NCBI GenBank assembly: GCA_964019335.1
Contig: OZ025666.1
Coordinates: 496,001-560,000 of the forward strand
Length of the DNA: 64,000 nucleotides
Reading direction: 5' to 3'
DNA from: Diplonema japonicum
Lineage: Eukaryota > Protista > Euglenozoa: Diplonemea
Of the stretch, positions 39,350 through 52,924 are shown one piece after another. Below the pieces are notes generated by a model that searched no databases, was not told the DNA's origin, and saw only the letters and a list, made by a program, of their open reading frames with translations. Both the position numbers and the translations under genes were made by a program. Position 1 is the stretch's first letter, and each line of letters starts with the position of its first letter.

Positions 39350-41505
39350 ATGGTAGAAGTGTCCATTATCGGGGCGGAGGTGACCAGGATGCTAAGTGAC
39401 TCGAAGGCAGACTTGAGAAAGAGGGGGGCCGCAGAAATCGACAGGAAGGTGCAACTTCATTGCTCAGAGAAGGACTGGGGTGCAGTCCACAATCTAATCA
39501 GACTTCTGAAGAATTCCTTCACACATTCAGTACAGAATTCACTGAGAAAAGGAGGGCTGCTGGCCATTAGCGCCGTGGCGATCGCCCTAGGAAACGGGAA
39601 TATAGGAGAGGTATGGTAAAAAAAGAAAAAAGAAAACTAAACCAAACAACAAAATATAACACACAAAGTTTGTCTACGAGCTTGTTGAAGCAGCGATCGA
39701 ACTGTTCCAGGACCAAGACCCAACAGTGCGTTACCACGCGGCGGAGTGCCTGTACAACATAGCCAAGGTGGCCAGGGGTCTCTTGTTGGTGGAGTTTGGG
39801 GAGATTTTCACGGGAATCTGCAATTTGAAGTCCGATAACGACAGAGCGGTATGCCACAACAACATTGGAAAAAAAAGGAAAAAAAAAGGTGCAAAACGCC
39901 TCTGACACCCTCGACGGTATCCTCCGCGACATCGCAACTGAGAGCAAAGAGTTTAACGTGGAACTGTTCGTCCGCACCATCAGGAAGCATGTTGTCTCTA
40001 CCAAGCCCAGAATACGCCAGTACGTGCTCTCCTGGCTGCTTGTGCTGGAGACCGCCGACATCAACCTGGTTGACTACCTCCCTGAGTTCTTGGGCGGTGT
40101 TCTTGACATTCTCGCGGACCCCGACAAAAAGATTGCGGGCCTAGCTGATAAGGTACTCTCCGCGTACCTCCAACGCCTTCGCGACATGGTCAGCAAGGAT
40201 ATGCCCGTGCAGTGGCAGAGGATCATCTCCATCATCATCGATGGGTGTATGAAACGTGACGACAGAACCCGTGGCAGCGCCCTTGCGTGGGTCGTGGAGT
40301 TCCTCTGCCTCTCGAAGTACAAGATGGTTGAATCGATCCCCGAGCTTCTCAAGGTCGTCCTAACTTGTATGGCCGACAAGGAGAAGAGTATCAAAGACAA
40401 CGCCAGCGTTGCCAACGGTTACCTTGCCTCTCTGTTCGGGGCTGCAAAGGAAACCGGTGGTGAGATTGAGGAGGAGGTGAAGAAGGTTCTGCCCGACGTG
40501 TTCGACTCCCTCACAAACTCGCTTTCATCGGGCGAGATTGCCACAAAGAGCAGCGCTCTTCAATGGTTGCACATGGTCCTCGAGGCCTACCCCGACCTCA
40601 TCTCCTCATCGTACCCATCTCTCTTTCCCGACCTGCTCAGGCTGCTAGGCGATCCCTCTGACCAGGTAGTCGAATTGTCCCTCCAGGTCCTCGCCATGAT
40701 CACAAGGGGATCCAGCAGCAATTTCCATAGGTTTCTGTCTGAGCTTGTCAGTTTCTTGCAAGTCGACGGCTTCAAGCACATGTCGCGAGCAGGCATGATC
40801 GTCAAGATACTTGCCAAGATCACACCTCCAGAGGAGCTCTTCTCAATCCTTGCCTCTATTATACCCACTGTTACAGACCTGGGCTTCGTGTCTAGTCTGG
40901 TGACAAACTTGAACATCGTGCTGCTGACGTCACCCGAGCTGCTGCCGCTCAGGAACATCCTGAAGAAGGGGCTCAACGATGAGAAGGCAAAGAAGCTATT
41001 CACGGAGCTGTACTACTGCTGGTCGTTCAATGCCGTGTCGCTTGTGAGTCTGTGCCTGCTGGCGAAGGCGTACAAGCATGCTTATGACCTGATCAGAACC
41101 TTTGGTGAGCAAGAGATCACCGTCTCGATGCTGGTTCAGATAGACAAGTTGATCCAGATGCTGGAGTCGCCTGTCTTCACATACATTCGGCTGGCGCTGC
41201 TGGAGCCCAACGAGAACCCCTACCTCATCAAGGCACTGTTTGGGGTCCTGATGCTCCTCCCGCAGTCCACTGCCTTCGACGATCTCCACAAGCGACTCAA
41301 GTCGGTGAACACGGTCTGCAACCTCAACGCGCAAATCCGAAGCGACGCCGCCACCAACGGTGACGACTCGTCAATTGAATGGTATGTTTTCTGTGCCTTA
41401 ATGAAACTCGCTCACAGGGACAAGCTTCTGGAGCACTACAAATCGGTGGAGACCGACAAGGAGGCGTTTGTTAAATCCGGTGGCAACCGTGCCACAGTAT
41501 CCTAG
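39350..41505 (+). CDS. VAC14: VAC14 scaffold of the PIKfyve/Fab1 complex, 4 exons
   Basis: RKGGLLA, VRYHAAECLYNIAKVARG, QIDKLIQMLESPVFTYIRLALLEP, LMLLPQSTAF; introns 39611-39668, 39849-39888, 41382-41417. Confidence 0.95.
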
Positions 41506-47411: not shown

Positions 47412-47679
47412 ATGATGACCGCGATTATTGAAGAGCGTTTGATCTGGGCTGATGATTACAACGACGAAATCGATGAGGATTTGGTCCCTCAGCTAGATCC
47501 GAGAGCAAAGTATGACAAGGGAAAAAAGAAGAAAACAAAGGGGGGGTAACAGGCCGTTCTGTCCCAGTTTGCAGTCTTGCAAGCGGGGCCTCCCTACTGG
47601 GTTGATTCCCGCCCCTCCTTGCTGTGCGCCTTTCGTGAACCAGGGCCCCTGGTTAGATGCTCCTCCTATCCAGCTTTGA
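47412..47679 (+). CDS. 74-aa PAM2-motif micro-protein, 2 exons (not in ORF track)
   Basis: Removing intron 47510-47552 (GTATGA...TAACAG) gives ...VPQLDPRAKPFCPS..., matching PAM2 LNxxAxxFxP. Confidence 0.65.
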
Positions 47680-49501: not shown

Positions 49502-49538
<37 letters not shown>

Positions 49539-49995
49539 ATAATAATAATAAAACAAGGATTCTTTCTTGTGTCTCGACTTGGGATTTTTTTTTTTTTAAA
49601 TAACTTCCCCTCTCCTTTTCTCTTCTTCTTTTTTTTCTTTTCCCCGCTTACCAAGGAGTTGTTCTTGTGGTGCCTTTTTACCCCATTTATTTTGGAAAAA
49701 AAAAAAAAGGAAAAAAAAAGATGAGACCATTACTTTATCGCGATTAAACACCTAGTTGATGGCTAGCGGTAGATGAGTAATAATTTATGAACATCAACCG
49801 CTCGGTCATGCAAGAAGAAAAAGAAATGGGCGAGGAAAAAGATCACCGAGGCCAAGAAAACACCTGGTAAAACAAGTTTTTTTTTTTCTTCTTTTTTTCG
49901 CCCCTTAACCGCTTTTTGCGGTGCTTTCGCCTCACCCCCCTTCCCCCCTCCCCTCCCTCTCACCAAAAAAGAAAAAAGATTTTTTTAAAGAAAAG

Positions 49996-50157
49996 GCAAG
50001 TAGGGGGTGTGTTGTTACGTTATGATGGTATACATTTTCACTACAAAAAAAAAAAGAAGAAAAAAAGCAAAACATTTTCCCATTCCAAACGCAGGATGGA
50101 AAAAAAAAAAAAAATGGAAAAAAAAAGAGGAATCGTGTGATAGGCAAGTAGGGTGGT

Positions 50158-50191
<34 letters not shown>

Positions 50192-51841
50192 CATATTTCA
50201 TTCCCCTTTCCCCTTTCAGTCCTCAGGCAGTGGAGTTGTCCCAAGGCTGCTAGATTGACGACCGCAGAATAAGATAAGTTATATGGAAAACCAAAAAAAA
50301 AAAAAAGAAAAGGATTACAACATGAGTTTTTTTGCTAAAGGCAAGCAGGGAGGTGTACTTGTCCCTTTATCCTTTATCATAAGGGACCACTGAATGATAA
50401 CCGCAGATTTTAAAAAAAAAAGAAAAAGAAAAGGGGGGAAATATAGGCAAGTAGGGTGGTGTTTCTTCCCCCCCCCCCCCCCCCCCTCTCAGTCCGAAGG
50501 ACTGCTAGATTGACAACCGCAGAAAAATACAAGATATAGGAAAATAAGAAATTGCTAAAGGCAAGCAGGGAGGTGTACTTGTCCCTTTATCCTTTATCAT
50601 AAGGGACCACTGAATGATAACCGCAGATTTTTTTTTAAAAAAAGAAGAAAAAAGGAATATATAGGCAAGTAGGGTGGTGTTTCTTTACTTCTTTCCCCCT
50701 TTCAGTCCTGAAGGACTGCTAGATTGACAACTGCAGAAAAAAAAGATTTTAAAAAGAAGATCCCAAAAGAAGGTTGATGGAGGCAAGCAGGGAGGTGTTA
50801 CTTACCCTTCATCCTTTTTTTTTTCTTCATAAGGGACCACACTGAATGATAACCGCAGATTTAAAAAAAAAGGAATAAAAAAGAAGAAGAAAAGGAACTA
50901 CAACGCAAGTAGGGTGTGTGTTTCTTTACTTCTTTCCCCTCTCAGTCCGAAGGACTGCTAGATTGACAACCGCAGAAAAATACAAGATATAGGAAATTAG
51001 GAAATTGCTAAAGGCAAGCAGGGAGGTGTACTTGTCCCTTTATCCTTTATCATAAGGGACCACTGAATGATAACCGCAAGATTTTTAAAAAAAAGAAGAA
51101 AAAAAGAAATATAGGCAAGTAGGGTGGTGTTTCTTTACTTCTTTCCCCCTTTTCAGTCCTTAAGGACTGCAGATTGACAACCGCAGATTTAAAAAAAGAA
51201 AAAGAAGAAGGAAAAAAAAGAAAGGATCTTATGTTGGGGTGTCGTGTCCCTTAATCTTTTATCACAAAGGGACTTTTTCCTTTTTTTTTTATAAAAATTT
51301 TTTTTCCTCTTATATAATGAATGGTATCTGAATGTGAAGAATAAACAGAGGTTGAATACTCTGGTTCTTTTTTTTTTTTTTTTTTCCAGTGTCTGGCTCA
51401 GATTGCCATTTGAATGACCACCGCAAATAAGTAATTGAAAAATAAAAGGGGGGAAAAGAAAAAAGGGTAGCGTTTTATTGACGATTCCTGTATCTCCATT
51501 GACAGGGACCTCAGAAGAGAAACTCATGCAAGTAGGTGGGTATTTTAATCGTTAAGTTGTGATATTCCTCTTTCTTTTTTTTTTTTATTCCGAAGGGGGA
51601 AGGGAAAAAAAAAAAAGAAAAGAACACTTTTTTCATCCCGATATGTAACCCAGCTTTTTCTTTTTTTTGTTTATCTTCTTTTTTGAAGAAAAGAAAAAAA
51701 AGAAAGCTGGCTTGATTGACAACCGCAGAAAGTTCTTAAAAAAAGTAAAAGAAGGGGAAGAGAGGAATCAAAATAAAAGGAGGGTTAAAAAAGAAAAGAA
51801 AAAAGAAAAGGCAAGCAGGGGGTGTTTTGGTTTTTACGCAG
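49996..51841 (+). repeat. Tandem array of alternating A/B units with GC-AG intron-like ends and internal hairpins
   Basis: Units GCAAGYAGGG...GAWTGAYAACCGCAG at 50144, 50341, 50447, 50561, 50665, 50783, 50905, 51014, 51115; diverged copies at 49996, ~51235-51425, 51528 and 51811. Confidence 0.9.
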
Positions 51842-52245
51842 AGCGCCCTCTTTCAGCAGGTGCTGCACATGTGCCTTTTTATTTTTTTCTCTTCTTCTTC
51901 TTTTTTTTTCCCCCCTCTACTTCCTTCTTTTGGAAATACGCTATTATAGTCTAATATAGCTATTCGTAAGTTTCCCCTGTGAGCAGGGCAACCTGGGTGA
52001 ATTTGAAGTTTTTTTTTTATATTCTTCTTTCTTTTTTTTTCCAGTTAAGAAAATGTTATTCTTTTTTTTTTTTTGAAAAAAGAAATAGTGCATACGAATG
52101 TAATAAGTTTTATGGGGGGGGGACTTGTCTTTTCTCCTATGTTACTCTTGGGGGGGGAGGAGGAGGGTAGCCCCTCTCATTGGTAATTCTTTTTTTTACT
52201 CATCCTGCTCTTATTCTTAACCCCTTAAGAAAAAAAAGAGTCTTT

Positions 52246-52277
<32 letters not shown>

Positions 52278-52924
52278 GAAGAAATAGTGCATTTTCCCTG
52301 GGAGTGCATTTTAAAAAAAAACAGAAATTGAAAACGAAAGAAAAGCAAAAAAAAAAAGAAGAAAAAAAAAAGAAATTGACAAAACAAGGGTTTTATCCGA
52401 AACCCTTGGTACACGTGATAGGATGCAGTCTTTATATGGCAAAGACACCAACGCTTGGAAGTCGTAGCCGTTTCTTAAGGTCCGATCGGGGGGAGAAGAA
52501 TAGGAAGGAGAAAAGAAAAGGAAAAAAAAAAAAAAAAAAAAGGAGAAAAGAAAAAAAAAAAAGAAAAGAAAGAAAAGCACGGGTATCCGTTCGTTTTCCT
52601 TCTTTTTTTTTTTCTTCTATTCTCACCACAGAGTTTTTACATAAGAACACGTTTTTTTTTTTTTTTTAAATTTTTTTAAAAGAAATATCTTTTTCTTCCT
52701 TCTTTTTTTTTTCTTCTTCTCCCCCCCCCCCCTTCCCCTCCTCTCGTTTCCTTTCATTCCCTCTCTTCTCTCTCTCTGTTCTCATTTTTTTATTCGCTTT
52801 TTTTTTTCTTCTTTTTTTTTTTCTATATTCCCGTTCCCCCTCCCCCCCCCCCCCACCCCCTGTTATTTAAAAAATCTTTTTAAAATTTTTTGTGTGAAAC
52901 CCCCCTCACTCAAACAGACAGCGA

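Follow-up and report, generated by a model that had tools for sequence, protein, structure and literature searches.

A tandem array of alternating GC-AG intron-like units at a single locus of Diplonema japonicum, tentatively interpreted as a non-coding mini-exon and intron cassette

Between two genes of the diplonemid Diplonema japonicum lies an array of short repeated units that begin and end like introns, and the question that it raises is whether these units are spliced, whether they give rise to small RNAs, or whether they are simply a repeat. The array occupies positions 49996 to 51841 of the 64,000-nucleotide (nt) stretch that we analyzed (the window; G000:C19:496001-560000 in the assembly searched, which comprises 62.5 Mb in 132 contigs). 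A sequence-only reading of the window had proposed that the conserved product is the “intron” itself, a non-coding host transcript releasing two kinds of small structured RNA, or else that an introner-like element was amplified in tandem. The interpretation that we favor, although we hold it at somewhat less than even confidence, is that the array would be a single-locus, locally amplified non-coding cassette of mini-exon plus GC-AG intron, the conserved ends of the units being splice signals. The array is a real and unusual local structure, and the argument for intronic small RNAs of a new class is currently weak.

The sequence is as it had been described, with units of two types, A and B, that alternate with a period of ~220 nt (Table 1). 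The start-to-start distances were 303, 218, 240, and 210 nt for type A and 220, 222, and 231 nt for type B. Nine units are well kept (A1 to A5 and B1 to B4), as originally counted, and the diverged members number five rather than about four. The nine kept units and three diverged ones start with (A)G/GCAAGYAGG (the slash marks the border of the unit) and end with CGCAG (CGCAAG in B4). Between these ends, type A units carry a pyrimidine tract followed by a CAGTCC/GGACTG stem with a loop of GAA, TGAA, or TTAA, and type B units carry GTCCCTT(T)AT...ATAAGGGAC, both as first reported. GCAAGYAGG matched 14 times in the window, 12 of these matches being on the plus strand within the array (dinucleotide shuffles, 1.63 ± 1.18), and TGAYAACYGCAG, with at most one mismatch, matched 11 times, 10 of them within the array (shuffles, 0.90).

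The likeness of the unit borders to splice sites, AG/GCAAGY at the 5′ end and YTGAY-N5-9-CAG/ at the 3′ end, also withstood scrutiny. AG/GCAAGY is present in 11 of the 12 units, the exception being A4, which has AC/GC. When ten units were aligned, the positions that were invariant or nearly so were (A)GGCAAGYAGGGNG(T)GTGT at the 5′ end and CGCA(G) at the 3′ end, flanking interiors of 31 to 124 nt (201 nt with U12 counted), and the edges of these conserved blocks fell within ~3 nt of AG/GC and CAG/. A YTRAY-type motif together with a 3′ CAG was found in A1 to A5, B1 to B4, and U12, which thus have a branch-like site and an acceptor by sequence; type A has TTGAC as this motif, type B has ATGAT or ATAAC, and the branch-like A would lie only 6 to 9 nt before the CAG. 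U0 and U13 conserve the two ends and nothing more, with ACGCAG only at the 3′ end. The genome has U1, U2, and U6 genes, and its U2 carries the usual GUAGUA branch-pairing box, which could pair with the YTRAY of the units. In the related diplonemid D. papillatum, a few GC-AG introns have been reported, which are spliced by the major spliceosome (PMC10161547).

If the units are introns, the spacers between them would be exons, and these putative exons are non-coding. We checked the frames of the spacers exon by exon and found, as had been noted, that the two copies of the 38-nt spacer have stops in all three frames; the remaining spacer chains, including those that skip the 38-nt spacers, break elsewhere, so that no single frame is possible. 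The sequence-only reading had allowed for polished reads restoring one open frame, but contigs from public sequencing runs agree with the assembly and the stops stay. In particular, 50673 to 51034 is matched without any difference by independent short-read contigs from two studies, and because these agree exactly, the stops are not attributable to assembly errors at homopolymers. An ordinary repeat-protein gene with duplicated introns was therefore ruled out, there being no open frame across a sequence that the contigs confirm. We also rejected the reversed arrangement, with the A-rich spacers as poly(A) introns and the units as exons, since the spacers begin with AT or AA and not with GT or GC.

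The array is confined to one locus. With 400 nt of the array as the query, a DNA search of the complete assembly returned the array only. At one mismatch or fewer, the 16-nt 5′ motif was found in the array and as one exact match in a coding region elsewhere on the same contig, and the other one-mismatch matches were coding or unrelated where inspected; the 3′ motif was found in the array and, outside it, at a start codon and in a major vault protein gene. When both ends were searched together, with a loose pattern and GT donors allowed, there were seven matches, all within the array, and none for the control, so the two end motifs occur as a pair nowhere else in the 62.5-Mb genome. The first of two metagenome scans gave no match, and the second gave 29 single matches and no tandem array. 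An introner-like mobile element with its own splice sites, amplified in tandem, had been offered as an alternative, and the self-contained donor, branch-like, and acceptor motifs of the units are what such an element would carry. We consider it hardly credible here, because there are no dispersed copies: apart from chance or coding matches, the DNA, motif, and two-ended searches of the assembly find only this array, and the metagenome scans find no tandem array.

Some of the conservation within the array is a matter of history. The segments from ~50487 to 50740 and from ~50945 to 51190 are nearly identical, both spacers included (50407 to 50864 aligned with 50859 to 51330), which indicates that a recent 453-nt duplication copied units and spacers together. 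The earlier claim that the spacers are more variable than the units thus stands for the older comparisons and fails for the 453-nt duplicate, in which the spacers are kept almost equally well, and part of the impression that units are better kept is owed to recent duplication rather than to selection. In an older comparison, B1 and B2 agree at every position over 79 nt (100% identity), and their upstream spacers (73 and 38 nt) cannot be aligned. Homology between types A and B extends over the whole unit (ACTT, a stretch rich in pyrimidines, AAGG(G)AC, and the 3′ block occur in both), so that a single ancestral unit gave rise to the array. The edge members U0 and U13 have the flank AAAGAAAAG/GCAAGYAGGGGGTGT in common, which fits expansion from within one original element.

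Folding gave no support to the proposal of a small structured RNA as the conserved product. Folds of the units (six on the plus strand and two on the minus strand) equaled those of dinucleotide shuffles, with z scores of −0.15 to +0.49, and RNAalifold on seven units gave a consensus of only −3.64 kcal/mol, with no covariation (covariation term, +0.19). A mirtron-type origin fared no better, the stems of 6 bp (type A) and 7 to 9 bp (type B) being too short and the minimum free energies equal to those of shuffles. At gathering thresholds, Rfam gave no match in the whole window; at an E value of 10 or less, the region from 49700 to 52100 gave low-complexity noise only, the Vault and small nucleolar RNA (snoRNA) models being absent or at noise level. 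A tRNA search of the window found none, so the units are not tRNA-like. On both strands, no C box lay near either end and no terminal stem was found, and the sole CUGA directly precedes AUGAUAA at the 3′ end of type B, the wrong order for a C/D RNA. An AGA-box architecture can be drawn by taking the CGC-AGA-NNN at each unit end, with the type A hairpin ending 16 nt before it; its lower stem would be 5 bp in type A and 4 bp in type B (by eye), and its 5′ pocket strand would be 25 to 60 nt and hypervariable (a T33 run or a C run). A reading of the end motifs as RNA polymerase III A and B boxes was dropped, as only 5 or 6 of 10 or 11 positions match by eye.

Nor did we find the targets that a guide RNA would need. 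Against the 7.1-kb rDNA unit from contig C119, in a scan that left bipartite H/ACA pockets outside its scope, the longest Watson-Crick matches to rRNA were 8 to 11 nt, compared with a shuffle range of 10 to 15, and one 17-mer match to the rDNA was an artifact of poly(C) against spacer poly(G). Local alignments to U1, U2, U6, and the spliced-leader (SL) exon gave no antisense match. There were sense coincidences: U1 stem-loop I and the type A units have the 11-mer CAAGTAGGGTG in common (50447 to 50462 in the window, and other positions), a match reached by ~0.3 to 1% of shuffles and one among ~40 comparisons; the pyrimidine tract of A3 to A5 matches the SL exon at 11 of 12 positions; and GGCAAGTA also occurs 59 nt upstream of a U2 gene. 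As they were found after ~40 comparisons, we treat these as leads and not as evidence. We saw no evidence of excised units as separate small RNAs.

Several observations weigh against splicing of the units. The introns of D. japonicum have the donor (G)/GTATG and a median length of 41 nt, and 98.3% are GT-AG; they have A in place of pyrimidines before the CAG, and YTRAY in only 13.9% (PMC12621601). With a donor consensus of G/GTATG and A-rich introns, the genome is thus unlike the array, in which GC is the donor dinucleotide in all 12 cases and GT in none; within the window, two clear introns of the Vac14 gene (39611 to 39668 and 39849 to 39888) consist of GTATG, an A-rich stretch, and AG, without TGAY. 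The five intact U1 genes start with (A/G)UACAUACCUG, and their arm pairs perfectly with G/GUAUGU. The array donor pairs with this arm, ACAUACCUG, at −2, −1, +1, +3, and +5 (and in type A also at +6 and +7), and, given that arm, GCAAGY is mismatched at +2 and +4. A GC donor normally requires every other position to be paired, which makes GCAAGY a poor one, and this poor fit to the genome's own U1 is the main reason why we do not rate splicing higher. The conserved 5′ block, at 16 to 19 nt, is longer than a donor requires. In type A, the putative branch site comes after the pyrimidine tract, and that tract has its own CAG, a second tract-plus-acceptor inside the unit, so that the type A acceptor is ambiguous. 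Much of the similarity between units reflects recent duplication, which needs no selection. Finally, the stretch is present in five public runs from two studies, none recorded as RNA and all looking like DNA assemblies; in the four examined, the contigs are all colinear with the genome, at a depth like that of the neighboring gene. Joints reported in these contigs were set aside as low-complexity artifacts at homopolymers, with sides of ~20 nt.

A variant U1 with CUUACC (GAUCUUACCUG), which would fit GCAAG and so relieve the mismatch, was considered and rejected as a deletion copy. It lies in G000:C81:424862-428021 (U1 match, 426362 to 426521), and comparison of upstream regions showed that a deletion of ~51 nt fuses the promoter element GGCAAAGATCTT to U1 position +7. 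The copy is probably a pseudogene, judging from this arrangement, and could mislead searches for alternative U1 arms. The canonical AUACUUACCUG arm is not enriched genome-wide (5 matches, compared with 10 for the control).

What, then, could the array be if it is not a spliced cassette? It might not be processed at all and be a neutral, minisatellite-like repeat in an intergenic region of low complexity, with a 220-nt unit that unequal crossing-over multiplied and gene conversion homogenized, and with a splice-like look inherited by chance from one ancestral copy. Much of what is described above suits such a repeat: the higher-order 453-nt duplicate that keeps spacers as well as units, the decay toward the edges of the array (B5, the A-like remnant, and U12), the full-length homology of A and B by which their common ends partly reflect common descent, the single locus, the donor that fits U1 poorly, and the failure to find structure or a known family. 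We nevertheless judge it unlikely, as it does not account for the identity of B1 and B2 next to unalignable upstream spacers or for the loss, in U0 and U13, of everything but the two end motifs, and AG/GCAAGY, YTRAY, and CAG would rarely coincide at the block edges of a random unit. The units might instead be tandem, non-intronic small-RNA genes of unknown class, cut from a polycistronic precursor, with the end blocks serving as protein-binding or processing motifs. The snoRNA clusters of kinetoplastids and euglenids are cut from such precursors, and their tandem repeats resemble the array in their alternating units of ~70 nt (66 to 76 nt here), short spacers, ~220-nt period, and polycistronic clustering. 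Small-RNA families typically combine conserved termini with an interior that varies, the 5′ block exceeds the length of a donor site, the sequences in common with U1 stem-loop I (CAAGTAGGGTG) and with the region upstream of a U2 gene (GGCAAGTA) can be counted here, and runs of T3 to T9 follow the type B units. This alternative appears quite unlikely to us all the same: type A units are followed by A runs and not T runs, the array lacks C/D boxes on either strand and a terminal stem, an AGA-box hairpin would need the variable pocket strand of 25 to 60 nt, complementarity to rRNA does not exceed that of shuffles, no Rfam model matches at threshold, and the fold z scores are ~0 without covariation.

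The release of two structured intronic RNAs (stable intronic, mirtron-like, or guide RNAs) as the reason for the existence of a non-coding host transcript, which the sequence-only reading put first, we now regard as improbable. In the older comparisons most spacers are less well kept than the units, the type A loop varies among GAA, TGAA, and TTAA on an unchanged stem, and GTCC...GGAC pairing is kept in both types. However, unit folds have the energies of shuffles, the weak seven-unit consensus has no covariation, the B3 stem loses 2 bp without compensation, stems of 6 to 9 bp are too short for Dicer-type processing, complementarity to rRNA, U1, U2, U6, or the SL is not above chance, and U0 and U13 retain only their ends. 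About as improbable, though compatible with the sequence, would be a dedicated non-coding gene in which the G-rich 16- to 19-nt block GGCAAGYAGGGNGGUGU at each unit start is what is conserved, its transcript serving as a reservoir of weak GC donors or as a multi-site platform or decoy for the U1 small nuclear ribonucleoprotein or U1-70K. This idea starts from one short coincidence after many comparisons, the presence of the type A 11-mer CAAGUAGGGUG in U1 stem-loop I, which in other eukaryotes is the binding region of U1-70K.

The spliced cassette that we tentatively prefer would have arisen as follows. An ancestral short, A/G-rich mini-exon with one GC-AG intron would have been duplicated into the diverging types A and B, the A-plus-B pair (~220 nt) would then have been amplified in tandem, and the 453-nt duplication would have come last. 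The region would be transcribed on the plus strand together with its neighbors, in an organism that practices SL trans-splicing, and the units would be removed, now or until recently, by a U2-type spliceosome. On this model, the 5′ block AG/GCAAGYAGGGNGGTGT would combine a donor with a G-run enhancer, the 3′ block YTGAY-AAC-CGCAG would be a branch site fused to an acceptor, and both blocks would be kept as splice signals while the interiors drift.

Known systems offer partial likenesses to such a cassette. The U2-type GC-AG introns of D. papillatum share the AG/GCAAGU-type donor, the strong consensus around the C, YTRAY, and the CAG acceptor, and the unit length of 31 to 124 nt falls within the diplonemid intron range; unlike them, the array is a non-coding tandem outside any gene, its excision is predicted from sequence, its donor is GCAAG where the genome's U1 calls for GYAUG, and its branch-to-acceptor distance is only 6 to 9 nt. 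Host genes of snoRNAs of the UHG/GAS5 type also have conserved “introns,” poorly kept short non-coding “exons,” and many repeats per transcript, whereas the units here have no snoRNA boxes, guides, or Rfam match and consist of splice signal plus filler. Introns of Giardia and Trichomonas have a fused branch-site/acceptor motif, ACTAACACACAG, comparable to the ~12-nt conserved 3′ block of the array with its branch-like A 6 to 9 nt before the CAG; the array differs in its sequence (TGAYAACCGCAG), in coming from an unrelated lineage, and in having a motif that is not genome-wide here. Introner elements are likewise repeated units with built-in splice sites, but they are dispersed, and the array is at one locus.

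The array sits in a 5.6-kb gap of ~36% G+C with many homopolymer runs, between two plus-strand genes (Table 1). The pyrimidine region directly upstream of the first unit (49875 to 49965, ~90 nt) resembles the longer tract at 52685 to 52864 that precedes the M64 peptidase gene, and it could be the SL acceptor region of a non-coding transcript. Just 3′ of the PDZ gene, a 45-codon open reading frame (ORF) at 47412 to 47546 (plus strand) encodes MMTAIIEERLIWADDYNDEIDEDLVPQLDPRAKYDKGKKKKTKGG, with an acidic head and a lysine tail and no Pfam match. Exact or near-exact homopolymers, A33, T33, C19-21, and T35, lie within 3 kb at 49504 to 49536, 50159 to 50191, 50469 to 50487, and 52243 to 52277, and the short-read contigs of all four runs end at them. 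At 50626, the last base of B2, one contig of run X1 has A for G, turning CAG into CAA; B4 has the same state, and the difference is probably a collapsed B2/B4 assembly path rather than a polymorphism.

Table 1. Units of the array and features flanking it (window coordinates)
Feature	Position	Strand	Remarks
Multi-PDZ gene, upstream neighbor	ORF end 47303	+	
Pyrimidine tracts (≥90%), directly upstream of first unit	49875-49907 and 49924-49965	+	Several AG follow
U0, diverged first unit, 99 nt	49996-50094	+	Keeps 5′ GCAAGTAGGGGGTGTG and 3′ ACGCAG; no TGAY, no hairpin
A1, long type A, 124 nt	50144-50267	+	T33 run; hairpin enlarged and disturbed; end TTGACGACCGCAG
B1, type B, 66 nt	50341-50406	+	Same sequence as B2 and as nt 1-65 of B4
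A2, type A, 76 nt	50447-50522	+	C-rich tract; hairpin loop GAA
38-nt A-to-B spacer, putative mini-exon	50523-50560	+	Second copy 50976-51013, 3 differences
B2, type B, 66 nt	50561-50626	+	
A3, type A, 72 nt	50665-50736	+	Loop TGAA; 3′ end AACTGCAG
B3, diverged type B, 76 nt	50783-50858	+	Stem reduced from 7 to 5 bp, no compensating change
A4, type A, 71 nt	50905-50975	+	AAC before unit in place of TAG
B4, type B, 67 nt	51014-51080	+	Extra A gives CGCAAG end; AG kept one base on
A5, type A, 72 nt	51115-51186	+	Loop TTAA; CT before AGATTGAC lost
B5, decayed type B	~51224-51333	+	GTCCCTT/AAGGGAC stem kept; both end motifs lost; insertion
A-like remnant	~51340-51426	+	T-run, CCAG/CTGG hairpin, AGATTG...TGAATGACCACCGCAA; no 5′ motif
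U12, long diverged unit, 201 nt	51528-51728	+	From GCAAGTAGGTGGG to GATTGACAACCGCAG
U13, mini-unit, 31 nt	51811-51841	+	Two ends only
M64-peptidase/tetraspanin gene, downstream neighbor	ORF start 52925	+	

The searches of the assembly also yielded observations unrelated to the array. The 3′ end of the SL exon followed by GT occurs at 256 genome sites, compared with none for the control pattern, and at least two of these sites (G000:C1:890279 and C2:842504) continue with the same sequence, GTGGTGGGGATAACATGG..., which suggests retrocopies or a dispersed element headed by the SL, and not SL RNA genes. Two major vault protein genes lie ~6.4 kb apart on G000:C3 (~219869 and 226294, minus strand), with Vault, Vault_3, and Vault_4 domains at E values down to 6e-24; vault particles, and hence a vault RNA, are therefore to be expected in this diplonemid. 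The rDNA unit on C119 repeats every 6825 nt, and five partial small-subunit rRNA matches of 266 to 591 nt were found outside the rDNA (C37:500460, C78:225662, C80:201742, C18:611890, and C34:455893).

What the array means depends on which explanation is correct. Without splicing, it is no more than a local tandem repeat. A platform or decoy for U1, if that were its role, would act in an organism in which cis-splicing has to be balanced with SL trans-splicing. If splicing does occur, as we tentatively prefer, an exon-intron cassette that is purely non-coding and amplified in tandem would be a rare find in a protist with SL trans-splicing; its textbook GC-AG signals differ from the genome's own GTATG/poly(A) style of intron, and the array would provide a test bed for how the diplonemid spliceosome handles unusual donors and very short branch-to-acceptor distances.

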